Assembly (NCBI GenBank): GCA_904063045.1
Contig: CAJFCJ010000038.1
Span: 100,315 to 164,314, forward strand
DNA length: 64,000 bases
Direction: 5' to 3'
Source: Dimorphilus gyrociliatus
Lineage: Eukaryota; Animalia; Annelida
A model generated the notes under the pieces. It ran no database searches, was not told where the DNA came from, and saw only the letters and a list, made by a program, of their open reading frames with translations. The translations under genes and the position numbers were made by a program. Each line of letters starts with the position of its first letter. Within the stretch, counting starts at the first letter, position 1. Of this stretch, positions 3,001 to 64,000 are shown in pieces.

Positions 3001-3231
3001 GAAACAGAGCAGTATTCAACTGAAAATTCTTTTGAAGGAATATCAACTAGTACTAAATACGAGAAGGTAACTGTTTCTGATGAAGAAAGGAAATTTCTAA
3101 AAAAACAAATTAATGACTTGGAAGATGAAGTTTACACTTATAAAACTCTTATGACAGCTTTTGCAGTTGGTTTTATTGTTACAGGTATCTGTTTGGTATT
3201 ATTCATGATATACGTATTTTGTAAACGATAG
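1..3231 (+). CDS. Type I membrane protein (5'-truncated by window): EGF - VWD - 10 tenascin-type EGF - 2 cadherin repeats - Thr/Ser-rich stalk - short coiled coil - TM - 2-3 aa tail; VWDE-like
   Basis: Frame 1 is open from base 1 (DGSIVSRAPDGSCPC...CICNRRFTGQSCER) into ORF 223..3231. VWD begins WGDPHLETFDG. Ten 6-Cys EGF repeats at ~1093-2065. Cadherin motifs AxDxDxG, AIDNGLP and VIDINE at ~2086-2685. TM TLMTAFAVGFIVTGICLVLFMIYVF; stop TAG at 3229-3231. Confidence 0.9.
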   Translation, partial: DGSIVSRAPDGSCPCKNNCGVNSVCTPQRKGRNCDQPFCPPDNTCSGRGVCKASGKCGASCICNRRFTGQSCERMLPRAMWGDPHLETFDGRSFDYFGIGQFWGCKSRSLAYQYRFFGYKGTSFIGQMAIKVGQISVLTITTNGKSSPNDLPTLRLDGNIQIDLENDKNLLFDNETIRMDISSTLKSNGDDNPTVLLVSINYAHGESLLVAASFSPKMKRQYLSVTVGPIVKLFNRTSGLCGFMNDDPSDDLMGPDGTNYTSFIEFTESWRIPLTIRDDGGLANSWSSSLSNFHKDDSIDQSYNDPTHKPLYSIKDFPKERVTKAKEICSIGKSSQIVQDQCITDIVMTNDESLGKQISLQSTLCPNQCSHRGNCVNGTCICIKDWSGLSCDYGKCGKCDNGNCLDGFCKCEPGFIGSSCNETAECKGNCSSNGKCIDTNVCKCNDGWISANCSEEAICNEGCSNRGVCIDHNVCKCNIGFGGKNCSIYTCENWNKCSGNGLCVEPGNCACFKGWKGLSCSQPICRDDCSSNGECIQPDVCKCYKGFVGDFCSEVIACPKQNNCYGNGICIGDDQCTCDIGYKSENCSQPVCDNSCEPNGVCDSPNRCKCKNGFAGDDCSLFSCEKLSFCSGHGKCQQFDNCLCDENWYGDSCNIPGCSGVADCSKNGQCIGANQCQCEKGFEGENCSLKIQLNLAKPIFLISNYSSVVSEYIEEGELLFIVEANDTDSGQAGIVYYALNSSPIPVDIDSINGRITARGPIKPGEYELKIDAIDNGLPAFTTTAILSLSVIDINECATIEKPVDQSIKSDIPIGSLIYQITATDNDLGLNSELIYDFSISGYSTQEVGISIENGTNKIVSVKSPLNTGKYEIIISVYDKSDNPCTSTSKVTVLIFPPEMNTTGLQVKQIIGEGDDQLTTIGNDNFKTTEISSTKSITTTKQQEVELSTSSMTNDITFQTKEEMELSTTSKPINGDLKTTKILKEQSTKWNEDKETTAPSGETEQYSTENSFEGISTSTKYEKVTVSDEERKFLKKQINDLEDEVYTYKTLMTAFAVGFIVTGICLVLFMIYVFCKR

Positions 3232-47414: not shown

Positions 47415-50400
47415 ATGAATTCAAGAGAAAAACTCAGTTTTAATTACTACAGGAAAGATATCGAAACCTTATTTATGAAAGAATGTGAACTATTAGAGAT
47501 GTGTGCAAGTCAATATGACTTGAATAGTTGGGCATCAGGAGAAACTTTCATAGTAGAATTAGCAAATCCAAAGAAAAAAACAAAAGCGGTCCAGGAGCTG
47601 TTGAATTACCTCAGTGAAATTTCAATAGATGAAACACTTAAAATATTAGAAACTATTAATGATAATGGTAATAAACAAGCTGAACAACTTAAAGAAAAGT
47701 TAAAAGATCAGACATATGTTTGGCATAAACTGGTAGCTGCCACAAAGGAACAGAGGAGGGATGACTGTGGTTTGATTTTCCTTCTTCCATTCATTGGGAC
47801 AAAACAAGCGAGGATTGAATATATCAATACTCCAATCAAAATGTTACAAATTACATCCGAGAATATTATTGAAAGAAAACTTGTAGATACAGAAGTGACT
47901 TATGAGAATTTTTTCAAGATATTCTATGAGAAATCTTACAATAAAATCTTGATTGAAGGAAAACCTGGAGGAGGAAAAAGTGTTCACATGAAAAATCTTC
48001 TCTTTAAATGGTCCAAGATTGAAGATAAGGACAAACTGTTTATATTTCTCATTTTGAAGAATGTTCAAATGGAAAAAAGTCTTTATGAGGAGATTGTGGA
48101 ACAAAACTTTAAAAACATTCCATTCATTAATGCCAACATTGTTGAATTATTCTTCACTGAGAAGAGAAACGATGTAATATTGCTTTTAGACGGAGCAGAT
48201 GAATTTCATTTAAAAAATCACAAAATCAATTCTATATTAAATGCACGAAAAACAAATATTCCAACTGCAATATGGTCTCGCAATTGGAAGGCACAAATGT
48301 TTGAAAGTACCTGTGATATTGCATTTGAGCTTATGGGATGGGATACTATTCAAATGGAAAACTTCTTTAGTAAGTGTTTTATCTCCAAGGAAAAAAGTGC
48401 AAATTTTATTGAAAAGGTTATAAATAATAATTCCAACATTAAAAGGTTGTGTAAAATTCCAATTTTAGCAATGATTCTCTTCCATCTTTGGAATGAAAAA
48501 AAAGATATTTCTAAAAAATCTTTATATGAAATTTATGAAGATCTTGTTAAGATTATCCTCGAAAAGAATAGAAAGATCTTGAAAGAATCTGACCAAAACC
48601 GTCTTTGTGAATTGTCTTTCATGAATCTTGCTAAAAACAAAATTATCTTACCCAAAGATAGCAATGAACAAGAAGTTTTTAAAGAAGGTTTACAGTGCTT
48701 AATTCAAGTTATTCCAACTGAATCTGATAAAATAGAACTACATTTCTATCATTTATCATTTCAAGAGTTTTTTTCAGCCCAGTTTCTAATAAAACAATTT
48801 AGACAAAGCAATAGAAACACTTTTTTGTCTAGTATGGATAATTTATTCAAAGAAACAAATAATTCCACCATTTATAATGTAATTGACTTTATAAAAGAAT
48901 ACTGTGAAGACATCTTTAATGATATTATACTCTACTCCGAACTTGTAAGAAAAATGTACAATTGTAGTGACAATATCAAAAAGATTTTATGTCAAGATTG
49001 GGATGACAGTGATACCATGAATTTAGAAAATGATGATATTCATGATTATATTCTGGAAACTTTAATAAAAAAGATTGGAAAGTTCATAAAAATTGTAAAG
49101 ATTGTCAATACAAATATCAACACTAAACTTTTATTTGAAATGCTTTTTTCAAATGCTGATGGTTTAAAGAAACTGATAATACATCATACAGTTTTTTCGG
49201 ATTATAGTTCAAATAATATATTCTTATCGAAATATTTGTGGAATTTAGAGCAATTGGAAATTAGGGATTGTTATTTGAATGAACAGACTCTGGAATATGT
49301 TGAAAAAGTCATAGGATATTGTCCTTCACTAAAAATTTTCATTCTATCAGACAACAAAATGTTGGGAGATGGGTTTAATGCAGTTTGTGAAAGACTAGCA
49401 TCACAAAAAATTACTCATATTGATGTTTCCAACTGCCATTTGAATAACCAAGAAATTATAACTCTTGGAAAAACAATTGCACAGTGTTCAGGATTAGAAA
49501 ATATAGATTTATCATATAATAAACAAATAGGAGAAATATTTGAAGTAATATCTGATGGATTGAAAACTCCCTTGAAACATCTAAAACAAATCAAATTGGT
49601 TGAATGTGGTCTAACTGAGAAGCAAGCTGTAAGTCTTCACAAAATTATTCAAGGTTGCTCCTGTCTGGAAATTATAGATTTATCAGGAAATCAAAATGCA
49701 GAGTTGGGAAGAAATTTTGGAAGAGACTCTTTTAAAAGTTTAATAAAAGTATACCTTAAATATTGTTGTGTAAGAGAAAAAGAAGCAATTCTTCTAGAAT
49801 CTTGCTCATTTCTACAATGTTTAGATTTATCTGAAAATAAATTAATGGGAAATGGATTTAAAAATATTTGTAATGGAATATCTTCATCATGTGGGTTTAT
49901 AAAAGAAATAAACCTAAAAAGTTGTAATCTAACTGAAAAACAAGGAGAATGGCTTGGAGATGCCTTGAAAAATTGTAGTTTGTTAGAAAGTGTTAGTTTA
50001 TCATATAATAGATTAGGTGAAAAAGCTTTGGAAACAATATGTGATGGATTAATGTCATCTTCTTCCAAACTAAGTGAAATCAACCTAACAAGCTGTTTCT
50101 TGAGTAAAAAAAGTGCAAATTCCCTTTCAAAAATAATACAAGGATGCACTGCATTAGAAAGCATTGATTTATCTGAAAATGAAGAATTAGGCAGAGAATT
50201 TGTAAAAATTTTTCAAAACTGCTCTGAAAAATTAAAAACTCTTAAACTCTCTAATTGTAAAGTAAATCAAGTTGATGCTCACAGTCTACAAAAGTTGACA
50301 CAAATTTGTTCTTCATTAGAAATTGTTGATTTATCACATAATAAGGAAATGGGAAATGGATTTCAATCAATTTGTTGGCAATGGTCAAAGGGTAACTCAT

Positions 50401-53400
50401 TAAAAGAAATAAATTTGTCTTATTGTAATCTTTCCAAAACAGAAGGAGAAGTTCTTGGAAAAGCACTTGAGAAATGTCACAGTCTAACAACTCTAGATTT
50501 GTCAGGAAATAAAAAAATTGGAAAGGCATTTTATGAAATCTTCAAACAACTGCAATTTTGTAAGAAACTGAAAGACATTAATATATCAGCCTGTCAAATT
50601 GCTATAGACACTGCTTTTTATTTTAGAACAGCAATTGAGGGTCATACTTCAATAGAAACTATAAATGTGTCATCAAACCATAATATTGACATGATTTTCC
50701 AAACACTAATGTCATCTTCTTCAGCATTAAAGAAAATCAATATAGCAAACTGCAACTTAAACAACCTGGAAGCAGTTCTTTTCAATACTTTACTAAAACA
50801 TTGCAGAGCAATCAGAGAGATAAATTTAAATGGTAATAAAACATTTATTAAATATATAGAAGCATTAATTCCATCAGCAAAATCTCTAAAAAATATAAAT
50901 CTGGCAAATTGCAATTTGCAAAATGAACAACTTCAGTTTCTCACAAAAACACTAAGACAATGCTCCTCATTAGAAACTATAAATTTATCCCAAAATTTCA
51001 AGATTTGTACAGAATTTACAAAGATCTATGAAGCACTTACTTCATTATCACCATCTTTAAAAAATATCAATCTGGCTAATTGTAATTTAGGAAATCAACA
51101 AGCCCACTTTCTCACAAAAACACTAAAACAGTATCCTTCATTAGAGAGCATAGATCTCTCTAGGAATTTCACAATTTCTACAGGATTATTAATGATTTTT
51201 GAAACATTTACTTCAGCGTCATCTTTTATAAAAAATATCAATCTCGCCAAATGCAATTTGGGAAATGTTCAAGTTCATTTTCTCATAAAAACACTAAGAC
51301 AATGTACTTCCTTAGAGAGCATAGATTTATCAAGAAATTCTGGCATCAATCAAGAATGTAAAACAATTTTTGAAGCACTTACATTATCATCACTTTCATT
51401 AAAAAATATCAATCTAGCAGAGTGTAATTTGGGAAGCAGACAAGTTCAATTACTCACAAAAACACTAAGAGAATGTCCTTCATTAGAGAGCTTAGATTTA
51501 TCTGGGAATTTTGGGATTTGTAAAGAATGTGAAAATATATTTGAAGCACTTTCATCATCATCATCTTCTTTGAAAAATATCAATCTGGCCAATTGTAATT
51601 TGGGAAATGAACAACTTCAGTTTCTTATAAAAACATTAACACAATATCCTTCATTAGAGAGCATAGACTTATCTGAGAATTATGGCATTTACAAAGAATG
51701 TAGCAATATTTTTCAAGCACTTACCTTATCATCACCTTCTTTAATAAATATCAATCTCGCTAATTGTAATTTGGGAAATGAACAAGTTCTGTTTCCCATA
51801 AAAAGATTAAGACAGTGTCCTTCCTTAGAGAGCATAGATCAATCTGGGAATTCTGATATTTATACTGAATGTGAAGATATTATTGAAACAGTTACATTGT
51901 CATCACATTCACTAAAAAATATTAATCTGGCCAATTGTAATTTGAAAAATGAACAAGTTCAGTTTCTGGCAATAGCATTAAGTAAATGTTCTTTATTAGA
52001 GAGGATAAATTTGTCAGGAAATTATGGCATTTACAAGGTATGTGATAAAATATTTCAAGCACTTACCTTATCATCACCTTCTTTAATAAATATCAATCTC
52101 GCTAATTGTAATTTGAGAAATGAACAAGTTCACTTTCTCATAAAAACACTAAGACAGTGTCCTTCTTTAGAGAGCATAGATTTATCTGGCAATTGTGGCA
52201 TTAATGAAGAATGTGAAAATATATTTGAAGCACTTACCTTATCATCACATTCTTTAAAAAATATCCATCTGGCTAATTGTAACTTAGGAAATGAACAAGT
52301 TCAGTTTCTCACAAAAATGCTAGGACAGTGTCCTTCAATTGAGACATTAGATTTGTCTGGGAACAGAGATATTTGTATAGAATATGACAATATTTTTGAA
52401 GCAATTACATCCTCAGCACTTTCTTTAAAAAATATCAGTCTGGCTAATTGTAATTTGGAAACTAGGCAAGCTCAGTTTCTTGCAAGAACACTAAGACAGT
52501 GTCACTTGTTAGAAAGAATAGATTTATCTGGGAATTCTGGGATTTGTAATGAATGGGAAAATGTTTTTGAAGCACTTACCACATCATACCTTTCTTTAAA
52601 AGGTATAAGTTTGGCACAGTGTAATTTAGGAGACAGCCAAGCTCTGCTTCTTATAAGAAAACTAAGACTATGTTTATCATTAGAGATCATAGATTTATCT
52701 GGGAATTTTTGGATTTGCACAAAATTTGGAAACATTTTTGAAGCACTTACATCATCATCACTTTCTTTAAAAAAAATTAATCTGGCTAATTGTAATTTGG
52801 AAAATAAACATGCTCTGGTTCTCATCAACACAATAAATCGGTATGCTTCATTAGAGAGCATAGATTTATCTAGGAATATTTGTATTTCTAAAGAGTATAT
52901 ACAGATTTTCAAAACACTTAGATCAGCATCAACTCCTTTAGAAAATATCAATCTCTCTAATTGTAATTTGAGAAATGAACAAGTTCACTTTCTCATAAAA
53001 ACACTAAGACAGTGTCCTTCTTTAGAGAGCATAGATTTATCTGGCAATTGTGCCATTAATGAAGAATATGAAAATATATTTCAAGCACTTACCTTATCAT
53101 CACATTCTTTAAAAAATATCCATCTGGCTAATTGTAACTTAGGAAATGAACAAGTTCAGTTTCTCACAAAAACATTAAGACAGTGTCATTCATTAGAGAG
53201 CATAGACCTATCTGGCAATTGTGGCATTGATGAAGAGTATGAAAATATATTTGAAGCACTTACCTTATCATCTCATTCTTTAAAAAATATCCATCTGGCT
53301 AATTGTAACTTACGAAATGTACAAGTTCAGTTGCTCACAAAAACATTAAGACAGTGTCATTCATTAGAGAGCATAAATTTATCTGGCAATTTTGGCATTG

Positions 53401-56400
53401 ATAAAGAGTATAAAAATATATTTGAAGCACTTACCTTATCATCTCATTCTTTAAAAAATATCCATCTGGCTAATTGTAACTTAGGAAATGAACAAGCTCA
53501 GCTTCTCACAAAAACATTAAGACGGTGTCGTTCTTTAAAGAGCATAGACTTATCTGGCAATTGTGACATTAATGAAGAATGTGAAAATATATTTGAAGCA
53601 CTTACCTTATCATCTCATTCTTTAAAAAATATCCATCTGGCTAATTGTAACTTACGAAATGTACAAGTTCAGTTGCTCACAAAAACATTAAGACAGTGTC
53701 ATTCATTAGAGAGCATAAATTTATCTGGCAATTGTGGCATTGATAAAGAGTATAAAAATATATTTAAAGCACTTACCTTATCATCTCATTCTTTAAAAAA
53801 TATCCATCTGGCTAATTGTAACTTACGAAATGTACAAGTTCAGTTTCTCACAAAAACATTAAGACAGTGTCATTCATTAGAGAGCATAGACCTATCTGGC
53901 AATTGTGGCATTGATGAAGAGTATGAAAATATATTTGAAGCACTTACCTTATCATCTCCTTCTTTAAAAAATATCCATCTGGCTAATTGTAACTTACGAA
54001 ATGTACAAGTTCAGTTGCTCACAAAAACATTAAGACAGTGTCATTCATTAGAGAGCATAAATTTATCTGGCAATTTTGGCATTGATAAAGAGTATAAAAA
54101 TATATTTGAAGCACTTACCTTATCATCTCATTCTTTAAAAAATATCCATCTGGCTAATTGTAACTTAGGAAATGAACAAGCTCAGCTTCTCACAAAAACA
54201 TTAAGACGGTGTCGTTCTTTAAAGAGCATAGACTTATCTGGCAATTGTGACATTAATGAAGAATGTGAAAATATATTTGAAGCACTTACCTTATCATCTC
54301 ATTCTTTAAAAAATATCCATCTGGCTAATTGTAACTTACGAAATGTACAAGTTCAGTTTCTCACAAAAACATTAAGACAGTGTCATTCATTAGAGAGCAT
54401 AGACCTATCTGGCAATTGTGGCATTGATGAAGAGTATGAAAATATATTTAAAGCACTTACCTTATCATCTCATTCTTTAAAAAATATCCATCTGGCTAAT
54501 TGTAACTTACGAAATGTACAAGTTCAGTTTCTCACAAAAACATTAAGACAGTGTCATTCATTAGAGAGCATAGACTTATCTGAGAATTATGGCATTTACA
54601 AAGAATGTAGCAATATTTTTCAAGCACTTACCTTATCATCACCTTCTTTAAAAAATATCCATCTGGCTAATTGTAACTTACGAAATGTACAAGTTCAGTT
54701 TCTCACAAAAACATTAAGACAGTGTCATTCATTAGAGAGCATAGACCTATCTGGCAATTGTGGCATTGATGAAGAGTATGAAAATATATTTCAAGCACTT
54801 ACCTTATCATCTCATTCTTTAAAAAATATCCATCTGGCTAATTGTAACTTACGAAATGTACAAGTTCAGTTTCTCACAAAAACATTAAGACAGTGTCGTT
54901 CTTTAAAGAGCATAGACTTATCTGGCAATTGTGACATTAATGAAGAATGTGAAAATATATTTGAAGCACTTACCTTATCATCTCATTCTTTAAAAAATAT
55001 CCATCTGGCTAATTGTAACTTACGAAATGTACAAGTTCAGTTGCTCACAAAAACATTAAGACAGTGTCATTCATTAGAGAGCATAAATTTATCTGGCAAT
55101 TGTGGCATTGATAAAGAGTATAAAAATATATTTAAAGCACTTACCTTATCATCTCATTCTTTAAAAAATATCCATCTGGCTAATTGTAACTTACGAAATG
55201 TACAAGTTCAGTTTCTCACAAAAACATTAAGACAGTGTCATTCATTAGAGAGCATAGACCTATCTGGCAATTGTGGCATTGATGAAGAGTATGAAAATAT
55301 ATTTGAAGCACTTACCTTATCATCTCCTTCTTTAAAAAATATCCATCTGGCTAATTGTAACTTACGAAATGTACAAGTTCAGTTGCTCACAAAAACATTA
55401 AGACAGTGTCATTCATTAGAGAGCATAAATTTATCTGGCAATTTTGGCATTGATAAAGAGTATAAAAATATATTTGAAGCACTTACCTTATCATCTCATT
55501 CTTTAAAAAATATCCATCTGGCTAATTGTAACTTAGGAAATGAACAAGCTCAGCTTCTCACAAAAACATTAAGACGGTGTCGTTCTTTAAAGAGCATAGA
55601 CTTATCTGGCAATTGTGACATTAATGAAGAATGTGAAAATATATTTGAAGCACTTACCTTATCATCTCATTCTTTAAAAAATATCCATCTGGCTAATTGT
55701 AACTTACGAAATGTACAAGTTCAGTTTCTCACAAAAACATTAAGACAGTGTCATTCATTAGAGAGCATAGACCTATCTGGCAATTGTGGCATTGATGAAG
55801 AGTATGAAAATATATTTAAAGCACTTACCTTATCATCTCATTCTTTAAAAAATATCCATCTGGCTAATTGTAACTTACGAAATGTACAAGTTCAGTTTCT
55901 CACAAAAACATTAAGACAGTGTCATTCATTAGAGAGCATAGACTTATCTGAGAATTATGGCATTTACAAAGAATGTAGCAATATTTTTCAAGCACTTACC
56001 TTATCATCACCTTCTTTAAAAAATATCCATCTGGCTAATTGTAACTTACGAAATGTACAAGTTCAGTTTCTCACAAAAACATTAAGACAGTGTCATTCAT
56101 TAGAGAGCATAGACCTATCTGGCAATTGTGGCATTGATGAAGAGTATGAAAATATATTTCAAGCACTTACCTTATCATCTCATTCTTTAAAAAATATCCA
56201 TCTGGCTAATTGTAACTTACGAAATGTACAAGTTCAGTTTCTCACAAAAACATTAAGACAGTGTCATTCATTAGAGAGCATAGACTTATCTGAGAATTAT
56301 GGCATTTACAAAGAATGTAGCAATATTTTTCAAGCACTTACCTTATCATCACCTTCTTTAATAAATATCAATCTCGCTAATTGTAATTTGAGAAATGAAC

Positions 56401-57128
56401 AAGTTCACTTTCTCATAAAAACACTAGGACAGTGTCCTTCTTTAGAGAGCATAGATTTATCTGGCAATTGTGCCATTAATGAAGAATATGAAAATATATT
56501 TCAAGCACTTACCTTATCATCACATTCTTTAAAAAATATCCATTTGGCTAATTGTAACTTAGGAAATGGACAAGCTCAGCTTCTCACAAAAACATTAAGA
56601 CGGTGTCGTTCTTTAAAGAGCATAGACTTATCTGGCAATTGTGCCATTAATGAAGAATATGAAAATATATTTCAAGCACTTACCTTATCATCACATTCTT
56701 TAAAAAATATCCATCTGGCTAATTGTAACTTAGGAAATGAACAAGCTCAGCTTCTCACAAAAACATTAAGACAGTGTCATTCATTAGAGAGCATAAATTT
56801 ATCTGGCAATTGTGGCATTGATAAAGAGTATAAAAATATATTTGAAGCACTTACCTTATCATCTCATTCTTTAAAAAATATCCATCTGGCTAATTGTAAC
56901 TTAGGAAATGAACAAGCTCAGCTTCTCACAAAAACATTAAGACAGTGTCGTTCTTTAAAGAGCATAGACTTATCTGGCAATTGTGACATTAATGAAGAAT
57001 GTGAAAATATATTTGAAGAACTTACCTTATCATCTCATTCTTTAAAAAATATCCATTTGGCTAATTGTAACTCAAAAAAGAGTATGAAAATATATTTGAA
57101 GCACTTACCTTATCATCTCATTCTTTAA
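47415..57128 (+). CDS. Giant single-exon NLR: putative death-fold/CARD-like N-terminus, NACHT, and about 90 RI-type LRRs; C-terminus frameshifted at ~57071
   Basis: Walker A GKPGGGKS (47958-47981), Walker B LLLDGADE, CKIPILAMIL, winged-helix FYHLSFQEFFSA. Alternating 28/29-aa LRRs follow. 9.7 kb of open frame. Confidence 0.9.
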   Translation: MNSREKLSFNYYRKDIETLFMKECELLEMCASQYDLNSWASGETFIVELANPKKKTKAVQELLNYLSEISIDETLKILETINDNGNKQAEQLKEKLKDQTYVWHKLVAATKEQRRDDCGLIFLLPFIGTKQARIEYINTPIKMLQITSENIIERKLVDTEVTYENFFKIFYEKSYNKILIEGKPGGGKSVHMKNLLFKWSKIEDKDKLFIFLILKNVQMEKSLYEEIVEQNFKNIPFINANIVELFFTEKRNDVILLLDGADEFHLKNHKINSILNARKTNIPTAIWSRNWKAQMFESTCDIAFELMGWDTIQMENFFSKCFISKEKSANFIEKVINNNSNIKRLCKIPILAMILFHLWNEKKDISKKSLYEIYEDLVKIILEKNRKILKESDQNRLCELSFMNLAKNKIILPKDSNEQEVFKEGLQCLIQVIPTESDKIELHFYHLSFQEFFSAQFLIKQFRQSNRNTFLSSMDNLFKETNNSTIYNVIDFIKEYCEDIFNDIILYSELVRKMYNCSDNIKKILCQDWDDSDTMNLENDDIHDYILETLIKKIGKFIKIVKIVNTNINTKLLFEMLFSNADGLKKLIIHHTVFSDYSSNNIFLSKYLWNLEQLEIRDCYLNEQTLEYVEKVIGYCPSLKIFILSDNKMLGDGFNAVCERLASQKITHIDVSNCHLNNQEIITLGKTIAQCSGLENIDLSYNKQIGEIFEVISDGLKTPLKHLKQIKLVECGLTEKQAVSLHKIIQGCSCLEIIDLSGNQNAELGRNFGRDSFKSLIKVYLKYCCVREKEAILLESCSFLQCLDLSENKLMGNGFKNICNGISSSCGFIKEINLKSCNLTEKQGEWLGDALKNCSLLESVSLSYNRLGEKALETICDGLMSSSSKLSEINLTSCFLSKKSANSLSKIIQGCTALESIDLSENEELGREFVKIFQNCSEKLKTLKLSNCKVNQVDAHSLQKLTQICSSLEIVDLSHNKEMGNGFQSICWQWSKGNSLKEINLSYCNLSKTEGEVLGKALEKCHSLTTLDLSGNKKIGKAFYEIFKQLQFCKKLKDINISACQIAIDTAFYFRTAIEGHTSIETINVSSNHNIDMIFQTLMSSSSALKKINIANCNLNNLEAVLFNTLLKHCRAIREINLNGNKTFIKYIEALIPSAKSLKNINLANCNLQNEQLQFLTKTLRQCSSLETINLSQNFKICTEFTKIYEALTSLSPSLKNINLANCNLGNQQAHFLTKTLKQYPSLESIDLSRNFTISTGLLMIFETFTSASSFIKNINLAKCNLGNVQVHFLIKTLRQCTSLESIDLSRNSGINQECKTIFEALTLSSLSLKNINLAECNLGSRQVQLLTKTLRECPSLESLDLSGNFGICKECENIFEALSSSSSSLKNINLANCNLGNEQLQFLIKTLTQYPSLESIDLSENYGIYKECSNIFQALTLSSPSLININLANCNLGNEQVLFPIKRLRQCPSLESIDQSGNSDIYTECEDIIETVTLSSHSLKNINLANCNLKNEQVQFLAIALSKCSLLERINLSGNYGIYKVCDKIFQALTLSSPSLININLANCNLRNEQVHFLIKTLRQCPSLESIDLSGNCGINEECENIFEALTLSSHSLKNIHLANCNLGNEQVQFLTKMLGQCPSIETLDLSGNRDICIEYDNIFEAITSSALSLKNISLANCNLETRQAQFLARTLRQCHLLERIDLSGNSGICNEWENVFEALTTSYLSLKGISLAQCNLGDSQALLLIRKLRLCLSLEIIDLSGNFWICTKFGNIFEALTSSSLSLKKINLANCNLENKHALVLINTINRYASLESIDLSRNICISKEYIQIFKTLRSASTPLENINLSNCNLRNEQVHFLIKTLRQCPSLESIDLSGNCAINEEYENIFQALTLSSHSLKNIHLANCNLGNEQVQFLTKTLRQCHSLESIDLSGNCGIDEEYENIFEALTLSSHSLKNIHLANCNLRNVQVQLLTKTLRQCHSLESINLSGNFGIDKEYKNIFEALTLSSHSLKNIHLANCNLGNEQAQLLTKTLRRCRSLKSIDLSGNCDINEECENIFEALTLSSHSLKNIHLANCNLRNVQVQLLTKTLRQCHSLESINLSGNCGIDKEYKNIFKALTLSSHSLKNIHLANCNLRNVQVQFLTKTLRQCHSLESIDLSGNCGIDEEYENIFEALTLSSPSLKNIHLANCNLRNVQVQLLTKTLRQCHSLESINLSGNFGIDKEYKNIFEALTLSSHSLKNIHLANCNLGNEQAQLLTKTLRRCRSLKSIDLSGNCDINEECENIFEALTLSSHSLKNIHLANCNLRNVQVQFLTKTLRQCHSLESIDLSGNCGIDEEYENIFKALTLSSHSLKNIHLANCNLRNVQVQFLTKTLRQCHSLESIDLSENYGIYKECSNIFQALTLSSPSLKNIHLANCNLRNVQVQFLTKTLRQCHSLESIDLSGNCGIDEEYENIFQALTLSSHSLKNIHLANCNLRNVQVQFLTKTLRQCRSLKSIDLSGNCDINEECENIFEALTLSSHSLKNIHLANCNLRNVQVQLLTKTLRQCHSLESINLSGNCGIDKEYKNIFKALTLSSHSLKNIHLANCNLRNVQVQFLTKTLRQCHSLESIDLSGNCGIDEEYENIFEALTLSSPSLKNIHLANCNLRNVQVQLLTKTLRQCHSLESINLSGNFGIDKEYKNIFEALTLSSHSLKNIHLANCNLGNEQAQLLTKTLRRCRSLKSIDLSGNCDINEECENIFEALTLSSHSLKNIHLANCNLRNVQVQFLTKTLRQCHSLESIDLSGNCGIDEEYENIFKALTLSSHSLKNIHLANCNLRNVQVQFLTKTLRQCHSLESIDLSENYGIYKECSNIFQALTLSSPSLKNIHLANCNLRNVQVQFLTKTLRQCHSLESIDLSGNCGIDEEYENIFQALTLSSHSLKNIHLANCNLRNVQVQFLTKTLRQCHSLESIDLSENYGIYKECSNIFQALTLSSPSLININLANCNLRNEQVHFLIKTLGQCPSLESIDLSGNCAINEEYENIFQALTLSSHSLKNIHLANCNLGNGQAQLLTKTLRRCRSLKSIDLSGNCAINEEYENIFQALTLSSHSLKNIHLANCNLGNEQAQLLTKTLRQCHSLESINLSGNCGIDKEYKNIFEALTLSSHSLKNIHLANCNLGNEQAQLLTKTLRQCRSLKSIDLSGNCDINEECENIFEELTLSSHSLKNIHLANCNSKKSMKIYLKHLPYHLIL

Positions 57129-58524
57129 AAAATATCCATTTGGCTAATTGTAACTCAGGAAATGCACAATCTCAGCTTCTCATAAAAACATTAAGACTCT
57201 GTCGTTCTTTAAAGAGCATAGACTTATCTGCAATTCTGGCATACATAAAGATGTGAAAATATATCTGAAGCACTTACATCATCATCACTTTATTTCAAGA
57301 AGTTCCATCCCGCATATCAAAACTTTCAAAATGAACAAGTTAAATATCTCATAAAAACACTTAAACAGTGTGCTTGTTTAGATAGCATACATTTGTCTAG
57401 AAATTATGGCATCAATGAAGAATGTGAAAACATATTTGAAGCACTTACATCATCTTCACTTTCTTTAAAAAATATCCATCTGGTGAATTGTAACTTACGA
57501 AATGAACAAGTTCACTATCTCACAAAAACATTAAGACAGTGTCATTCATTGGAGAGCATAAATTTATCTGGCAATTATGGCATTTATGAAGAATATGAAA
57601 ATATTTTTGAAGCCCTTTGCTTATCATCACATTCTTTAAAAAATATCCATCTGGCTAATTATAACTTAGGAAATGGACAAGCTCAGCTTCTCACAAAAAC
57701 ATTAAGACAGTGTCCTTCTTTAAAGACCATAGACTTATCTGGCCATTGTGGCATTAATGAAGAATGTGTAAACATATTTGGAGCACTTACATCATCTTCA
57801 CTTTCTTTAAATAATATCCATCTTGCATATTGTAACTTAGGAAATGAACAAGTTCAGTATCTCACAAAAACACTAAGACAGTGTCCTTCTTTAAAGAGCA
57901 TAAATTTATCTGGCAATTATGGCATTAATGAAGAATGTGAAAATATATTTGAAGCACTTACATCATCTTCACTTTCTTTAAATAATATCCATCTGGCTAA
58001 TTGTACCTTAGGAAATGAACAAGTTCAGTTCCTCACAAAAACACTAAGGCAGTTCCCTTCTTTAAAGAGCATAGATTTATCTGGCAATTTTGGTATTAAT
58101 GAAGAATGTGTAAACATATTTGATGCACTTACATCATTGTCACTTTCTTTAAAGAGTATCCATCTGGCGTATTGTAAATTAGGAAATGATCAAGTTCAGT
58201 TTCCCACAATAACACTAAGGCATTTTCCTTCTTTAAAGAGGATAGATTTATCTGGCAATTGCGGCATTGATGAAGAATATAAAAATATATTTGAAGCACT
58301 TATGGTATCATCACATTCTTTAAAAAATATCCATCTGGCTAATTGTACCTTAGGAAATGAACAAGTTCAGTTCCTCACAAAAACACTAAGGCAGTTCCCT
58401 TCTTTAAAGAGCATAGATTTATATGGCAATTGTATCATTAATGAAGAATGTGAAAATATATTTGATGCACTTACCTTATCATCACATTCTTTAAAATATA
58501 TCGTTATGCCTTATTGTAACTTAC
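50720..58524 (+). repeat. Coding tandem array of 171-bp units (57 aa = one 28-aa plus one 29-aa LRR), near-identical from ~52930 to 57070
   Basis: CTCACAAAAACATTAAGA recurs at 53163 and 53334 (171 bp apart). Diagnostic variants recur at exact multiples of 171 (TGAGAATTAT at 51674, 54581, 55949, 56291). Confidence 0.95.
57072..58524 (+). pseudogene. Out-of-frame downstream LRR cassettes (about 2 damaged units, then about 6.6 open units in ORF 57393..58529)
   Basis: A deletion joins AATTGTAACT to CAAAAAAGAGTATGAAAAT at ~57071; further indels lie at ~57230-57260. The LRR pattern resumes and ends abruptly at TGTAACTTAC (58524). Confidence 0.85.
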
Positions 58525-61500
58525 AATAAGGATGAGAATATATGTTCAGTTTTAGACAAAGCAGCATCAATGCCCAAATCATTAGCAAAGTTTATGTGCT
58601 CTTTATGTCTTGTTAAAGTGTCTTGAATGTATTCTAAAACTTGTTGAACTTGTTGTTGCTTCTTACCAACATCCTCTTTTATACCAAGCTGTATTAATTC
58701 AGTAAGTCTAGCAACCTCTAATTTTGGTTCTTCAATTTCATTGCTTATTTTCATTCTGATTGATTGTGCTGCTGCAGTCTGAAATCTGCATCCTTTCTTT
58801 GTGTAATAGATGAATGTTTTCTTTCCAGAATACATTGCTTGTTGATTGTGTTCAATGTCCAGTGGGTTTTTCTTAATTTTGAACAGGTGTTGTGTTTGGT
58901 CACAATCTCCATATCTTATATCTTCTTTTGTTATGTGGTAAGCATGATGGAGTATTGGATCAACTGAGAATAAGAGATCTTTATACTTGATGAGAAATTC
59001 TTTGGAGCATAATCCATTTTTGGTGATAATTGTTGTATCACACACTACTTGAACTGATTTTAATTCTGTACAAGTATTTAAGGTTGTTAGATCACCAAGC
59101 CATGTACTGTGCATTCCATGCTTAGATCCAAGTATTGTTGGTAGTTGAGGTGCCAATGGTGTGAGTAATGCTACCATCTTGTTTCTCATAATGAATTCTT
59201 TGCATAGAAGTTGTGATACTTGTTTGAAAACTGTTTGTAAATTTTGGAAATTTTTATCAATGTTATTTAATAAAGCAGATGTTCGAATAGCATCTGCTAT
59301 GTCTATTTTGTGAAATTTTGGCATCTGTATGCTTTCTGATACTCTTCTCCTCCATTCATGCTTCTTTGGTGTTCTTTGCAAAAGTGTAAATTTTCCATTT
59401 GCTTGATGTGTTTGAAATTGTTTATCTTTTGGACTTTGGTACCAAGTGTCCAGTCTTGGTAATGGATTGAAACTAATTTTCTTCTTGTTGAGTTCAAAAT
59501 CTTCTGCTTTTGCCATTCTAGCAGGTTCCATTTTGGTTGTTTTCAACATTTTGAGTATGTATTTGTTGTTAATATCCCATATATCAGGTGAGATTATTTC
59601 TCTGACCATCCAGGTCCTAACCAATGGTGTTACATGATTTTTGATCAGCATATGATAAGTCTTGTCACCATCTCTATACCAATCATTATAGGTTAGTATA
59701 TTTTGTATTTCTGTATTATTTGCTTTTCTCAAAGTTGATATCTTTCCATCATAATTCTGCAATCTTGCAACTTCTTTGTTTGAAATGATTTTATATTTGA
59801 TATCTGCCATCATTCTGTTATCAGCATAATTTGAATTTGTAAGATCAGTTCTTAATAAGTCGTATTCCTTCTGGGGTACTAAAATTCTTGTTCCAGGACC
59901 ACCATATCCTTTGATATATCTATCTTGATAAGGTAAATCCATTATTGCATAGTTGGGACATGAAAAATATCCTCCAAGCTTAATGCACTCTACATTGTAG
60001 GATACTGCTTTCCATGGGGATTCATGACCAAGGAGATTTTGTCCTTTCTGAGGATTGAAAATAATAATGGAATCCAGAGTTCTACAAAATTTATGTTTGA
60101 TAGAACAGTCCTCTAAATATTCCAAGTTGGTTGTTATCTTATCCTGACTTGGGTGCCAATAAGCTTTGCCAATTTGGAGAATTGTTGTAAATTCTTCAAC
60201 CACTGTTGTTCTTGGCCATTTGTAGTTTGATCCTTTGTTTTCATTGTACATTAGAAGGTTTCCTTTTTCAATGAGTTTTTGTCCATTTAAGGTCTTTTTT
60301 GACAATAACATTTTTCTGCATTGTTTGTCACTTAAGGTAAGTGTTTGTTTTTCAACTCTGTGTTTCTTTGCTCCAAAGAAGTAATGAGTGTAAAAGTTGA
60401 TTCTTCTCTTTACCAAACACTTAACAGCTTGTATTGCCAAATTATCAGCTTTAATTTCATAAATATTTGCCATTATTTTGGTCATTTGTTTAGTTTTGAA
60501 TGTGCAAATTGGTTCATCAGCCAGATCAAATGACTGATGTACTTGTTGCCCTTGACAGAATTGTACTGAAGGAAGCATTCTCACAGTTATGTTTGCTTTT
60601 GTTATTGATACATTTCCCTGAACCAAGTTTAATAAGCATAGCGCTAGCAGAGTGTAAACAATGGATCCTCTTATAGGAAGTGTTCCAACTTTCCTTTCTT
60701 GTTTCTCTACCTTGAGTGTGTTAACTCTAGTTGGTTGTTTGTTAGCCAATCTTAGTCTACTAGCATGGTAGAATTTTCTTTTGCCATTTAATATTTCCAA
60801 TTCATAAAGACATTTTGTAGTATCAGTAGCAGTTACAATGTATGGTCCACTCCATTTGCTTGTATTTATCCTATTCATTCCTTGACCAATGTGTTCATTT
60901 TTTATGTGTACCCATTCACCAATTTGGTAAGTTGGGGGTTTTCTTGTGATAGTTTTGTTTACTCTATCTCTATATGCCTTCTTTTTCATGACAGATTTGC
61001 ACAATGCAGTAGCTCTTATTTCTTCCATTTCATGTTTTCTATCAAATAGAAATTTTGTTGTTGGTTCTAATCTTGGAACTTCCATTAACAAATCTAAGAC
61101 ATTCCTATTCTTCAATCCAAATAATATTTCATGTGGAGTTTTGCCTGTGCTTCCCACTGGAATTTGGTTTAAGCATGTTTGAATTATTGGTAATTGTCTT
61201 GTCCAATCTGTTAATTGTTCCATAACTACATGTTTATGTAGTGCTCTGCGAATTTCCAAATTCTTTCTTTCTACCATTCCATTACTTTGGCTATGGAATG
61301 CTGTTGTTTTTATTTTCCTTATTCCCATTGATGTAACCATCTCTGTAAATATTTCCCCCAGAAAATTCCGTCCTTGGTCTGTGAGAATTTCTTCTGGAAT
61401 ACCAAATATTGGAAAGTAGTTAAAAAACAAGTGTTTTGATATTTCTTCAGCTGTCTGAGTTTTTAATGGAAATAGGTTTGTAAATCTTGACATGTGATCT

Positions 61501-61796
61501 ATAATGACAAGTATGTATTTGTAAGATTCATGTCCTGTTAGTGGTCCCATTATGTCCATTGCAATTCTTTGCATTGGTAGAGTTGGATGGGGTGTTTCAA
61601 CCAATAGATGTTTGTTTCCAGGTGCTCTTAATTGTTCACAGAATTTGCAATTCTTTATATGGTCTTTAATTGTTTTCTTAAGTTGTGGATGCCAGAAAGC
61701 TTGTTCCAAAGTATGAATTGTTATGTCTACACCATAGTGTTCAAATATTTGATGTTGATGTATTTGGTTCAGTAGGTTGTTAAAGTTAGTAGTGAA
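58521..61796 (-). CDS. Uninterrupted integrase - signal peptide - envelope-like glycoprotein fusion ORF (TM anchor missing by truncation)
   Basis: Open frame from ~61796 (EHYGVDITIHTLEQAFW) through the integrase and GPY motif, then hydrophobic GSIVYTLLALCLLNLVQG (60615-60668) and a Cys-rich ectodomain (AVKC..FYTHYFFG..CRKM..YKWP..CSIKHKFCRT; LLC..LG..GDL...C..CSKEF..VDP). The stop codon comes from the antisense LRR sequence. Confidence 0.8.
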   Translation of the reverse strand, partial: FTTNFNNLLNQIHQHQIFEHYGVDITIHTLEQAFWHPQLKKTIKDHIKNCKFCEQLRAPGNKHLLVETPHPTLPMQRIAMDIMGPLTGHESYKYILVIIDHMSRFTNLFPLKTQTAEEISKHLFFNYFPIFGIPEEILTDQGRNFLGEIFTEMVTSMGIRKIKTTAFHSQSNGMVERKNLEIRRALHKHVVMEQLTDWTRQLPIIQTCLNQIPVGSTGKTPHEILFGLKNRNVLDLLMEVPRLEPTTKFLFDRKHEMEEIRATALCKSVMKKKAYRDRVNKTITRKPPTYQIGEWVHIKNEHIGQGMNRINTSKWSGPYIVTATDTTKCLYELEILNGKRKFYHASRLRLANKQPTRVNTLKVEKQERKVGTLPIRGSIVYTLLALCLLNLVQGNVSITKANITVRMLPSVQFCQGQQVHQSFDLADEPICTFKTKQMTKIMANIYEIKADNLAIQAVKCLVKRRINFYTHYFFGAKKHRVEKQTLTLSDKQCRKMLLSKKTLNGQKLIEKGNLLMYNENKGSNYKWPRTTVVEEFTTILQIGKAYWHPSQDKITTNLEYLEDCSIKHKFCRTLDSIIIFNPQKGQNLLGHESPWKAVSYNVECIKLGGYFSCPNYAIMDLPYQDRYIKGYGGPGTRILVPQKEYDLLRTDLTNSNYADNRMMADIKYKIISNKEVARLQNYDGKISTLRKANNTEIQNILTYNDWYRDGDKTYHMLIKNHVTPLVRTWMVREIISPDIWDINNKYILKMLKTTKMEPARMAKAEDFELNKKKISFNPLPRLDTWYQSPKDKQFQTHQANGKFTLLQRTPKKHEWRRRVSESIQMPKFHKIDIADAIRTSALLNNIDKNFQNLQTVFKQVSQLLCKEFIMRNKMVALLTPLAPQLPTILGSKHGMHSTWLGDLTTLNTCTELKSVQVVCDTTIITKNGLCSKEFLIKYKDLLFSVDPILHHAYHITKEDIRYGDCDQTQHLFKIKKNPLDIEHNQQAMYSGKKTFIYYTKKGCRFQTAAAQSIRMKISNEIEEPKLEVARLTELIQLGIKEDVGKKQQQVQQVLEYIQDTLTRHKEHINFANDLGIDAALSKTEHIFSSLL

Positions 61797-64000
61797 TTAC
61801 CAGTAATGGTTGACAACCATTCAGATACCATACTAAATCATCTTTGACAAACATATGTTCAATAAAATTTTGTATTCCTTGAACATTTCAACATCAATAT
61901 TTGCTCCTTCCAATTTTCTACAATTTCATTAGCGTGTCATCCAAAACTTTTCAGTGTAGAAGTTTATCTCAACAGGTTTATTTTTTAATTTCATGACCTG
62001 TAATTTTTGTCATCTGCTTCTTCATCATAACCATCATTATTGTCTAAAATTCATCCAAACAATCAGCTAAGTCTTCTAAATCTTCTGTATCAATATAAAA
62101 GCATTAAGCATATCCTTTCTTTCTGCTAATTGTGGAATTGTATTGCCATTTTTTTTCTTCATTTAGTCTTTCCTTTAGTAAATTTCGGAAATCAATAATT
62201 CATCAGTTTCTCCAATTCTGGATATCCAGTCTGCTCTGTTGGTTCTTCCAGTATGTAAATTATTTCAAAGTCCATATCCATAAGTGCCATAACCCATTTA
62301 ACAGTACTTGAATTTAATTTGTTTGTACAAATGTTTGTACCAAATTTTGGTGATCAGTGTAAAGAAAAAATTTCTTATACTGCAAGTAATGGGAGAATTT
62401 TGTACTGCCCAATAGACTGCAAAAGCTTCTTTTTGATAAGCTGCATACCTTAGTTGTGTATTGATTAGGAGTTTGAAGCAAAAGAAATTGGCTTTCTTAT
62501 TTTCTTTCCATCTTCTTCCCATTCTTGTTCTAAAACTGCACCAACTGCATAATTGGAGCATCTGTTGTTAGATAGAATGGTTTACTAAAATCAGGTAGTT
62601 GAAGTATTGGTGGTTCTGTCATTGATTTCTTTAGTGTCTGATACGCTTTCTCTGCTTCTGTAGTCCATTTTAGTCTTTCAGTCTTCTGATGTAGTTTTAA
62701 TAATTCTCTCAAGGTTTTGTAATTTTTGCAAAGTCCTTGATAAATCTTCTATAATAACACACAAAATGCACAAAACTTAGTAAAGTATTTGCAAACATTG
62801 GTAATTCAGCATCTTTTATCTTTTGAATCTTTTCTGGATCAGTTTCAATACCATTCTGTGTAATTCTATGACCAAGAAATTGTACTGATCTTGTAGAAAT
62901 GCACATTTGCTTAACTTGATTCTGAAGTCCTTTTCTTTGATTCTTTCCATCAGTTTCTGTAGACTTGTGTAGTGTTCCTCCAATTTTGTAAAAACAATAA
63001 TATCATCCATATAGTTAATACAGAAATTTTCCAATCCATTTATGACAAAATTTGCCATAATATAGCTGAAGTGTGAGGGTGCATTTGCTAAACCAAAAGG
63101 CATTCGATTAAATTCAAATAGACCAAATGGTGTTATGAAAGCAGTTTTTCTTTGTCTTCTTCCTTGATAGGATGTGGTGAAATGCACTTGTCAAATCCAA
63201 GATGGAAAAGTATTTATGTCCTCCTCCAAGTTGTCAAATAAATCTTCTTGGTGGGATTGGATAACAATTCTTTTTGAATGCTTGTTAAGTTTTCTGTAAT
63301 CTACACACATTCTTAATGTTCCTTCTTTCTTTTTCACAAAAACAATTGGTGAAGCCCATTGGCTTTTGCTTGCTCTAATCAAACCATTTGCTAATAATCC
63401 ATTAAGTGTTCCCTACATTCCTGTGTTTGTTGGTGTAATCTGTATGTCTTTGTTTAAAAGGTTTCACATCTTCCAATAATTCAATTGCCATTGGTGAACA
63501 TCTGTGAGCCAATGTCATTTTGATTTGTAGCAATAATGTCTTCATAATTCTTGATGATTTCTTTCAATTCTTCCCTGATTTTGTCAGGATTATTTTGGAC
63601 ACATGTAAATAGTTGTCAATTTCTACTGTAGTTGAATTAATGTGGTGTATATTTTGATTAGACATATGTTCAAACTCAACACTTTCAGCAATTTCTATCT
63701 CAGGAGTTGCTGGAGTTTTCATTTGTTCTTTTCAACTTTGATAGTTATTCATCCTTTAATTCTATGTATTGTGTTTTCATTTCCATTTCTGTAATTAATT
63801 CTTCAGATTCAGTTTCAGTTTCTTCAGCAGATGAGTTAATGATAATAACTGAGTCATTGTCTGAATCTGTTGTTGCCATTTTCTTCTTCAGATGACTTTA
63901 TACCATTAACAATATCCAAATCTGAGTCTGAGTTATGCTCTGGTTCATTACTCATCTCTGTATCATAATTTTCAAAGAAACTCAAAGTTTCATTTGAGCC
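58525..64000 (-). mobile_element. Ty3/Gypsy LTR retrotransposon with env-like gene (3' end and LTR absent; 5' end beyond the window)
   Basis: Order RT - RNase H - integrase - env on the minus strand: [38 protein letters not shown] (63002-63013), YLTTDA, YAAYQKEAFAVYWAV, HHCC zinc finger, D-D-E core (MDIMG, TDQG, VERKN), GPY module. Confidence 0.95.
61800..63420 (-). pseudogene. Frameshifted RT/RNase H region of the Gypsy element
   Basis: Split across at least five short ORFs in changing frames (63191-63382, 62816-63187, 62709-62906, 62530-62712, 62298-62561). TDAS is broken to TDAP by an indel. Confidence 0.9.

Follow-up and report, generated by a model that had tools for sequence, protein, structure and literature searches.

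What history leaves an intracellular receptor gene with some two dozen nearly identical LRR units in shuffled order, and does such an array diversify in the germline or in the soma? The question is raised by a locus within a 64,000-nucleotide stretch of Dimorphilus gyrociliatus DNA (the window). A preliminary description had proposed a satellite-like, rapidly remodelled sensor domain in an invertebrate NLR, built from LRR cassettes and able to generate allelic or somatic diversity in loose analogy to agnathan VLR assembly. NLRs whose near-identical repeats are reshuffled are well studied in fungi, where they generate recognition diversity; in animals they are known from database surveys alone. 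The locus offers an animal example that is clear, open to dissection and built of true LRRs, and its last duplication and the junction can be read from the sequence.

An Annelid NACHT-LRR Gene

The locus lies in a continuous open reading frame (ORF) of 3237 amino acids (positions 47415–57128; all features are on the forward strand unless stated otherwise), which encodes a helical N-terminus, a NACHT NTPase and approximately 91 LRRs of the ribonuclease inhibitor (RI) type. Its 1139 N-terminal residues are identical to those of DgyrCDS14440, a public gene model of the miniature annelid D. gyrociliatus, and the adjoining genes are of metazoan types (teneurin-EGF/cadherin and polycystin). A bacterial or viral origin, suggested by the long ORFs and the 30% G+C content, is ruled out by these neighbours and the exact match. 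Scans of the window for tRNAs and Rfam families detect no structured RNAs.

The N-terminal region (47415–47939, approximately 175 amino acids) has no significant match by Pfam, ESM Atlas, or AF2 followed by Foldseek. Its AF2 model is helical (pLDDT 66.9), and the CARD-like hints that it gives are weak and non-significant, the best being the Apaf-1 CARD (Foldseek probability 0.3, E above 4). It is followed by the P-loop core of a NACHT-type STAND NTPase (47946–48242; Pfam PF05729, 33.3 bits against a cut-off of 26.7, with scores ranging from 31.4 to 33.3 bits), whose Walker A and Walker B motifs read GKPGGGKS and LLLDGADE in the translation. This supports the preliminary reading of the gene as an invertebrate NLR, here that of an annelid. 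Approximately 9.5 strongly diverged 57-amino-acid LRR pairs (49245–50882) precede the in-register array. In a phmmer search against the PDB, the LRRs of the array match ribonuclease inhibitor (1dfj, E = 3e-16) as well as NLRP5, NLRP4F and NLRP1. The AF2 model of the LRRs (pLDDT 79.6) has 24 beta-alpha repeats, and Foldseek aligns it to 1dfj with a TM score of 0.81 normalised to RI. These results confirm the proposed 28/29-residue alternation of ribonuclease inhibitor, and the gene has, by sequence and by predicted fold, the C-terminal RI-type LRR domain of animal NLRs. Judged from the sequence, the locus would encode the sensor domain of a NACHT-LRR gene of the NLR type with a single exon, the array serving presumably as an NLR sensor or as an autoinhibitory solenoid. 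An uninterrupted RI-type array of this length is also of structural interest: at the curvature of RI, approximately 91 LRRs would be too long for a flat horseshoe and would have to wind into a multi-turn solenoid.

The public model cuts this protein to 1148 amino acids. It omits the array by means of a 170-nt GT-AG “intron” (50833–51002), after which the reading continues in a frame that meets a stop codon; this intron is probably a consequence of repeat masking. Since the annotation skips the array, surveys of animal NLRs that use predicted proteins will miss such domains.

Old Edges and a Young Core

Tandem Repeats Finder (TRF) reports 36.2 copies of a 171-bp repeat at 50883–57072, with 85% matches, and the repeat in a second phase at 57078–58523. 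Cutting in register from position 50883 yields 36 units of 57 amino acids, which fall into two parts. The old units 1–12 (50883–52934) have a mean pairwise identity of 75% in DNA and 59% in amino acids. Units 13–36 (52935–57038) form a young, homogenised core and correspond to the approximately 24 near-identical double LRRs noticed earlier. Among themselves they are 89–100% identical in DNA, and their mean amino acid identity is 85% (1368 amino acids), rising to 87% for units 14–32 (1083 amino acids). Identity to the young consensus is 71–90% for the old units and 84–91% for the units that trail the core.

The core contains 14 sequence types, which differ at 42 variable columns and are arranged as a block-wise mosaic. 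The order of units 14–33 reproduces the string of variant letters in the preliminary description: its B unit is found at 53277, 53961 and 55329 (spacings of 684 and then 1368 bp), and its D unit recurs as units 17 and 25, 1368 bp apart. Within 52930–57070, self-identity is 95.7% at a lag of 1368, 93.5% at 684 and 93.3% at 342, compared with 91–92% at odd multiples of 171. The nested periodicity of 171, 684 and 1368 bp that had been proposed is therefore real as a set of lags, but the longest of them reflects a single duplication, present in 2.0 copies, while the 684-bp period is kept over only 399 of 684 nt. What the array records is a few duplications nested within one another over a short history, rather than a higher-order repeat in many copies.

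Exact Repeats and Chimeric Units

Positions 53525–54897 and 54893–56265 are identical over 1373 nt at a lag of 1368, with zero mismatches. They constitute an exact tandem duplication of eight units, the first copy at 53525–54892 and the second, together with 5 shared nucleotides, at 54893–56265. A further stretch of 399 nt (53276–53674) is repeated exactly at lags of 684 and 2052.

The junction of the duplication falls in unit 24 (54816–54986), a zero-mismatch chimera of two parents. Over its first 77 nt it equals units 18 and 32 at the corresponding positions, and over the remainder it equals unit 16; the crossover interval is the 5 nt GTGTC at 54893–54897, coinciding with the overlap of the two 1368-bp copies. 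This is the half-unit recombinant that had been pointed out earlier, RNVQVQF joined to CRSLKSID...CDINEEC. Unit 21 is likewise a zero-mismatch chimera of two parents. Unit 22 (54474–54644), to which units 30 and 32 are identical, joins 83 nt of a young unit exactly to the old unit 5, so that exchange must have taken place between the old and the young parts of the array. The “shuffled cassettes” are thus a real mosaic, but a few unequal-exchange events account for it, and unit 24 is merely where the duplication was joined.

Recombination and Selection among Units

The preliminary description had named recombination and amino acid change among units as points to check. A recombination signal is found: the PHI test gives p = 0.006–0.04, and the four-gamete test identifies 42 site pairs, with Rmin 7. 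An excess of amino acid change is not: pN/pS among units is 0.6–0.75, alike in old and young units, which indicates only weak constraint and lends no support to positive selection on the units overall. Unit positions 1–12, which form the beta-1 face, do not vary in the core. The changes in the core cluster in the beta-to-alpha loops (N:S of 12:1, against 13:8 elsewhere), a clustering that is non-significant (Fisher p = 0.11).

Repeats of high internal conservation (HIC) are defined by an identity of 85% or more across 100 or more amino acids (Dyrka 2014, PMC4986451). In fungal NLRs unequal crossing-over maintains such repeats, which are also shuffled, both inside single genes and from one gene to another; a paper of 2026 reports such NLRs from Metazoa as well (PMC13449251, PMC4986451). 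The core reaches this identity and length on a STAND NTPase. It also has the marks of repeat shuffling and concerted evolution, namely the chimeras, the PHI and Rmin signals, the 1368-bp duplication, the old edges around a young centre, and a parallel in a paralogue. This paralogue, P0009, bears a homogenised array of its own whose sequence differs from that studied here, which suggests that each gene homogenises separately; at positions 4, 8, 9 and 11 it shows the pattern expected of HIC repeats, in which a few sites on the binding face are hypervariable and positively selected.

The 3′ End of the Array

Beyond the core lie two degenerate units (57039–57290). A deletion of 88 nt has shortened unit 37, and unit 38 has lost single nucleotides at two sites; the frame is broken at 57072–57290, with a stop at 57126–57128. 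The net loss is 90 nt, and the original frame therefore resumes downstream. Short-read contigs over units 37 and 38 show no indel differences. Approximately 6.6 trailing units follow (57393–58529), which have diverged from the young consensus by 10–16% and yet keep the original frame open over 378 codons (P < 0.001 by neutral simulation). The array stops mid-unit near 58526, adjoining a transposon-derived ORF on the reverse strand (58521–61709) with an integrase core (PF00665). This ORF ends at a stop inside an LRR unit, and both partners are thus truncated at the junction.

A candidate GT-AG intron at 57082–57339 (258 nt) would restore a frame of 3618 amino acids through the trailing units; no splice joint is seen in the contigs.

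A Proposed History of the Array

The exact repeats, their junction, the recombination signal, the gene architecture and the RI-type fold together point to a history that we consider probable: the RI-type LRR array of an annelid NLR has been shaped by germline unequal exchange and gene conversion, that is, by concerted evolution. The LRR domain would have grown to approximately 91 repeats by tandem duplication of an ancestral 171-bp module, a 57-amino-acid pair of A and B LRRs. In vertebrate RI and NLRP genes, one 171-bp exon encodes one LRR pair, and 171 bp would thus be the ancestral unit of duplication. Unequal crossing-over or sister-chromatid exchange in the germline, in meiosis or mitosis, together with short-tract gene conversion between misaligned units, would keep units 13–36 nearly uniform and continually rearranged; such concerted evolution would leave old, diverged units at both edges of the array. 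Earlier duplications of four and of two units may have produced the 684-bp and 342-bp sub-periods, and conversions drawing on old unit 5 (apparently also on old unit 8) the other mosaic units. In the last event, unit 16 would have been exchanged with the unit eight positions downstream, duplicating 1368 bp and creating the chimeric unit 24. That no substitution separates the two copies suggests that this event was very recent.

By analogy with the fungal HIC NLRs, arrays of this kind would be expected to vary in length between individuals, and allelic diversity of the array is plausible. It is tempting to go further and suppose that a clade of D. gyrociliatus NLRs, comprising at least this gene and DgyrCDS14643, evolves in the fungal HIC mode, with RI-type LRRs hypervariable between individuals in number and order and the present gene, with its approximately 91 LRRs in a multi-turn solenoid, as an extreme. 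We regard this as possible but somewhat doubtful; a somatic version of such diversification is very unlikely. If the germline version were true, an animal would possess a recombination-driven generator of germline diversity for intracellular receptors. The host is a culturable annelid of small genome and short generation time, in which variation of the array between strains can be measured by long reads.

Alternative Explanations

Unit order and copy number rest on one assembly (PacBio RS II, PBcR, Quiver, Pilon, HaploMerger2; PMC7854359), and one may ask whether the array, though real, owes its perfect 1368-bp duplication, the exactness of its unit identities or its unit order to the long-read assembler, or to Pilon, whose 101-nt reads have ambiguous placements within it. 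The method is error-prone for such arrays, polishing with short reads can make near-identical units falsely uniform, and 100% identity over 2 × 1368 nt is an outcome that over-polishing or spurious duplication would give; the literature holds that HIC repeats call for careful reconstruction from long reads. Short-read contigs break into unitigs of approximately 90 nt within the array, which cannot order the units. The depth of type-specific Logan short-read unitigs can be compared with that of the unique flank, in ratios that are rough. In two data sets, a unitig present in nine assembled copies has 13.2 and 16.3 times the depth of the flank, and one present in four copies has 3.3 and 4.7 times. 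A two-copy unitig inside the duplication, specific to the D-type units 17 and 25, has 1.7 and 1.5 times, not the 1 expected of a single copy. Across four runs the nine-copy ratio extends from 7.6 to 16.3, and one SNP differs (56427). One of these runs, X1, the sole result of a search for RNA runs, has uniform depth and 28-kb contigs and looks DNA-like. Ratios such as 16 for nine copies depart from the assembled number, but the depths in X1 and X2, reported as at or above the assembled copies, do not suggest over-assembly; the commonest unit type exceeds its assembled number, and the true array may be longer. Moreover, the usual error of assemblers in tandem repeats is collapse, not expansion; the two parents of the junction unit meet cleanly within a crossover interval of 5 nt, as biological unequal exchange would have it; and a mosaic of 14 types is unlike blanket homogenisation. 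An artefact is, in our judgement, distinctly improbable.

The damage at the 3′ end raises another question, namely whether the core is a satellite-like by-product of neutral runaway expansion in a gene that has lost its C-terminus and is on the way to pseudogenisation. With a 3′ frameshift and a mid-unit junction with a truncated transposon ORF, the gene may be decaying rather than acting as a sensor, and the weak constraint among units and the absence of the array from the public annotation fit this picture. Against it stands a stop-free frame of 9.7 kb at 30% G+C, of which 5.5 kb is old and diverged; to stay open for so long it must have been under purifying selection. The trailing units are still open despite their divergence, so that the damage must be recent or bypassed, and the equality of pN/pS in old and young units gives no sign of newly relaxed constraint. 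We therefore think this explanation unlikely. Programmed or somatic diversification, in which the array would be a substrate for VLR-like copy-choice assembly or cell-specific recombination, is far less credible still. Near-identical units are a substrate prone to recombination, the units are mosaic, and there are weak hints of differences between samples: runs X3 and X4 have a G>A change at 56427, and X4 also has two contig joints of low quality, which we discarded as evidence (flanks below 31 nt, flagged unreliable). However, the germline ORF is complete, a few ordinary exchanges explain the mosaic, and the gene encodes a cytosolic NLR of the RI type rather than a capped extracellular receptor with 24-amino-acid LRRs. 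Nor do donor cassettes appear: in the 64-kb window no unit-like DNA occurs outside 50883–58524, and the predicted protein in the database that most resembles the units has 31% identity, which together argue for an intragenic origin. Of the preliminary reading, then, the very young, recombinant core and its germline remodelling stand; its satellite character does not extend beyond 2.0 copies of the eight-unit block, and the somatic proposal finds no support.

Comparison with Known Repeat Systems

The closest parallels are the fungal HIC NLRs (Podospora HET-E, HET-D and HET-R and the NWD family; NLRs with ANK, TPR or WD40 repeats). Both combine a STAND NTPase with C-terminal near-identical, superstructure-forming repeats; in both, unequal crossing-over and gene conversion are at work, the first and last units are diverged, transposons lie nearby and related genes homogenise independently. 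Fungal NLRs, however, lack the RI-type LRRs that occur here, in an animal host and in a far longer array (approximately 45 double units), and positively selected hypervariable positions are not apparent in the core, whose beta-1 face is invariant.

RI and the vertebrate NLRP and NLRC proteins share with this gene the alternating 28/29-residue A/B pair, a 57-amino-acid module. RI has 15–16 LRRs and mammalian NLRs some 10 to nearly 30, against approximately 91 in one exon here, with a core of 89–100% DNA identity. In the plant NLRs RPP5 and flax L/M/P, tandem blocks of several LRRs occur in the sensor domain with chimeric junction repeats, as they do here, and the plant alleles differ in repeat number; the blocks, according to a secondary account, are duplicated by intragenic unequal crossing-over (Noel et al. 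1999, via PMC13449251). They are NB-ARC NLRs, however, with LRRs of the plant type; few blocks are duplicated in them, and the copies are less alike.

The agnathan VLRs are alike solely in their recombined LRR modules and the resulting mosaic of variants. They depend on a germline gene that is incomplete, with banks of partial cassettes on its flanks, and on AID-like deaminases, and their LRRs are extracellular and capped; the present frame is complete in the germline at its full 3237 amino acids, and the window holds no cassette bank. The analogy drawn at the outset finds no support. Alpha-satellite higher-order repeats resemble the array in their 171-bp monomer, in multi-monomer blocks that are more similar than adjacent monomers, in a homogenised centre with diverged edges, and in an origin by unequal exchange. 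The equal monomer length is coincidental, 171 bp being 57 codons here, and while such satellites are non-coding and present in many copies, this array is coding, keeps its frame open and has its eight-unit block in two copies.

Structure of the array and its protein

Tandem Repeats Finder places a 171-bp array of 36.2 copies at 50883-57072 and a phase-shifted continuation of it at 57078-58523. Read in register from 50883, the first of these divides into 36 units, each of 57 amino acids. Units 1-12 are old (mean identity 75% in DNA and 59% in amino acids). The near-identical double leucine-rich repeats (LRRs) of the preliminary description are confirmed: they are units 13-36, a young core with mostly 0-24 differences (maximum 28) per 171 positions and a mean amino acid identity of 85%. 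The young units comprise 14 sequence types with 42 variable columns, and the order of these types reproduces the letter string by which the units had been labelled. One exact repeat of 1373 nt (53525-54897 and 54893-56265) has a lag, the distance between compared positions, of 1368; another of 399 nt (53276-53674) recurs at lags of 684 and 2052. Identity is 95.7% at lag 1368, 93.5% at 684, 93.3% at 342, and 91-92% at odd multiples of 171. The proposed 1368-bp periodicity thus holds as an exact repeat, but it reflects a single duplication (2.0 copies) and not a many-copy higher-order repeat. Alpha-satellite also has a 171-bp monomer; the equality is a coincidence of 57 codons.

The array lies in an open frame of 3237 codons (47415-57128), in a window of about 30% G+C. 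Its translation contains a NACHT domain above the curated Pfam cut-off (33.3 versus 26.7 bits), with Walker A (GKPGGGKS) and Walker B (LLLDGADE) motifs, and approximately 91 LRRs running from residue 611 to the protein end. The N-terminal 175 residues are helical and have no Pfam hit, and CARD-like matches for this region are non-significant. Six units match ribonuclease inhibitor (RI; E = 3e-16) and the LRRs of NLRP5, NLRP4F and NLRP1 in the PDB. An AlphaFold2 model of units 13-24 (mean pLDDT 79.6) shows 24 regular strand-helix repeats and superposes on RI with a TM score of 0.81, normalised to RI.

Public annotation and the 3' end

Over residues 1-1139 the protein agrees without a difference with DgyrCDS14440 of the annelid Dimorphilus gyrociliatus (contig CAJFCJ010000038.1, assembly GCA_904063045.1). 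That public model has only 1148 amino acids and leaves out the LRR array: a 170-nt GT-AG intron (50833-51002), nearly the exact length of a repeat unit, brings a stop codon into frame. The public annotation has no gene over the 7.6-kb LRR array or the adjoining transposon frame (generally, window positions 51031-61031). The truncation is probably a repeat-masking artefact hiding a 3237-amino acid protein. Because the model drops the array and nothing is annotated over it, the array-bearing protein is missing from databases; the best matches of a ten-unit query against predicted proteins are at most 31% identical.

The other long frames of the window code for metazoan proteins: teneurin-type EGF, cadherin and VWD proteins, a polycystin-1/REJ-like channel, and fibrinogen and F5/8-C lectins. 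Among them are a 1002-amino acid frame at 223-3231 with VWD, teneurin-type EGF and cadherin domains and, just upstream of the NLR gene, a very large polycystin-1/REJ-like gene with long exons (21840-42845; public model 6071 amino acids; fibrinogen-C, F5/8-C, PAN, PKD, PLAT and channel domains). Scans of the window for tRNA and Rfam families gave no matches.

The frame ends in degenerate units. Unit 37 has an 88-nt deletion and unit 38 two 1-nt deletions, resulting in a stop at 57126-57128; since the net loss is 90 nt, the old frame resumes downstream. Short-read contigs are reported with no indel differences over these units, so the break is probably real. Beyond it lie 6.6 trailing units (57393-58529), which differ from the young consensus by 10-16% and yet keep 378 codons open (P < 0.001 in neutral simulation); they were coding until recently or are still coding. 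A candidate GT-AG intron predicted at 57082-57339 (258 nt) would bring these units back into frame and yield a hypothetical protein of 3618 amino acids. Near 58526 the array breaks off mid-unit against a minus-strand transposon frame (58521-61709; 1062 amino acids) with an integrase core (rve). Its stop codon falls inside the truncated LRR unit, and both frame and array are cut at the junction. There are no LTR-like direct repeats within 57000-64000, and no LRR sequence in the rest of the window beyond the junction.

Origin of the pattern

Unit 24, the half-unit recombinant noted earlier, fits a two-parent model with no mismatch: its first 77 nt equal the corresponding stretch in units 18 and 32, and its remainder equals that in unit 16. 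The crossover can be placed anywhere in 54893-54897, precisely the 5 nt by which the two 1368-bp copies overlap, so one unequal exchange accounts for both duplication and recombinant. Such an exchange would have joined unit 16 to the unit eight positions downstream. Two further units are exact chimeras: unit 22, whose sequence recurs as units 30 and 32, combines a young unit with old unit 5, and unit 21 combines units 18 and 17. For units 33-35, two-parent models leave 1-2 mismatches versus 4-6 for the best single parent; for unit 36 a single parent fits about equally well. Across the 14 types, the suspected recombination among units is borne out by a pairwise homoplasy index below permutation expectation (p = 0.006-0.04) and by 42 site pairs with all four gametes (Rmin 7 within 171 nt). 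The homogenised centre is bordered by diverged units on both sides, a pattern that classically marks tandem arrays shaped by unequal exchange. The array is real and striking, but we consider it quite likely that only ordinary processes are behind it, namely unequal exchange and gene conversion, both recent and in the germline, within the exon that encodes the LRRs of this annelid NLR.

Comparison among units gives a pN/pS of 0.60-0.75 for the young ones and 0.57 for the old ones, which indicates weak purifying selection with no overall replacement excess. Replacements cluster in strand-to-helix loops (N:S 12:1 versus 13:8 elsewhere) non-significantly (p = 0.11), and the first strand (positions 1-12) is invariant across the core.

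Is the array as assembled real? The assembly comes from PacBio RS II reads processed with PBcR and Quiver, followed by Pilon polishing with 101-nt reads and reduction by HaploMerger2 (PMC7854359). This pipeline can mis-handle such arrays, and short-read contigs break up within this one. A real array whose perfect 1368-bp duplication, unit identities or order arose in assembly or polishing is nevertheless improbable, given the depth of type-specific unitigs relative to unique flank in four short-read runs (X1-X4). A unitig at nine assembled copies reaches 13.2x, 16.3x, 11.4x and 7.6x in X1-X4; one at four copies 3.3x, 4.7x and 1.65x in X1-X3; and one at two copies, found only in duplicated D-type units 17 and 25, 1.7x in X1 and 1.5x in X3. 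Single-copy unitigs of the trailing units give 0.9x and 1.1x (X1), 1.2x, 1.3x and 2.1x (X2), and 0.5x and 1.3x (X3). The copy number in the reads is no lower than in the assembly, and the true array may exceed its assembled length. Spurious expansion is therefore unlikely; unit order here is that of the assembly, and unitig depths bear on copy number. At 56427, where unit 33 carries a base private to it (column 72), X3 and X4 show A in place of the G of the window and of X1 and X2; the variant unitig stands at 2.3-2.6x flank depth in X3 and X4, a possible array difference among samples.

Programmed or somatic diversification, proposed by analogy with the cassette assembly of agnathan variable LRR receptors, is extremely improbable: the germline gene is complete and there is no cassette bank in the window. 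The protein is moreover a cytosolic RI-type LRR receptor, and we reject the analogy, which fails every defining feature that could be tested.

Comparison with known repeat arrays

The nearest known phenomenon is seen in fungal NLRs with a high internal conservation (HIC) repeat domain, in which WD40, ANK or TPR repeats share 80-100% identity; their uniformity is thought to be due to unequal crossing-over, and repeats are gained, lost and shuffled, with polymorphic number (PMC13449251, PMC4986451). A 2026 survey reports HIC domains in NLR-like proteins of animals, plants and bacteria as well (PMC13449251). The D. gyrociliatus array has the level of identity that defines HIC repeats and shows shuffling; it is an LRR-type animal example of this kind. 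What makes it interesting is the exceptional number of repeats, a duplication junction that can be read directly and the gap in the annotation, together with its prediction of hypervariability at strain level.

DgyrCDS14643, a paralogous NLR on another contig (NACHT module 40% identical), has its own homogenised 57-amino acid LRR-pair array of approximately 10 units with a quite different consensus. It follows that homogenisation acts within genes and recurs in this gene family. The variable residues of the DgyrCDS14643 array fall mainly on positions 4, 8, 9 and 11 of the first beta-strand motif. Between NACHT and LRRs, its gene model further contains MULE transposase and FLYWCH domains.
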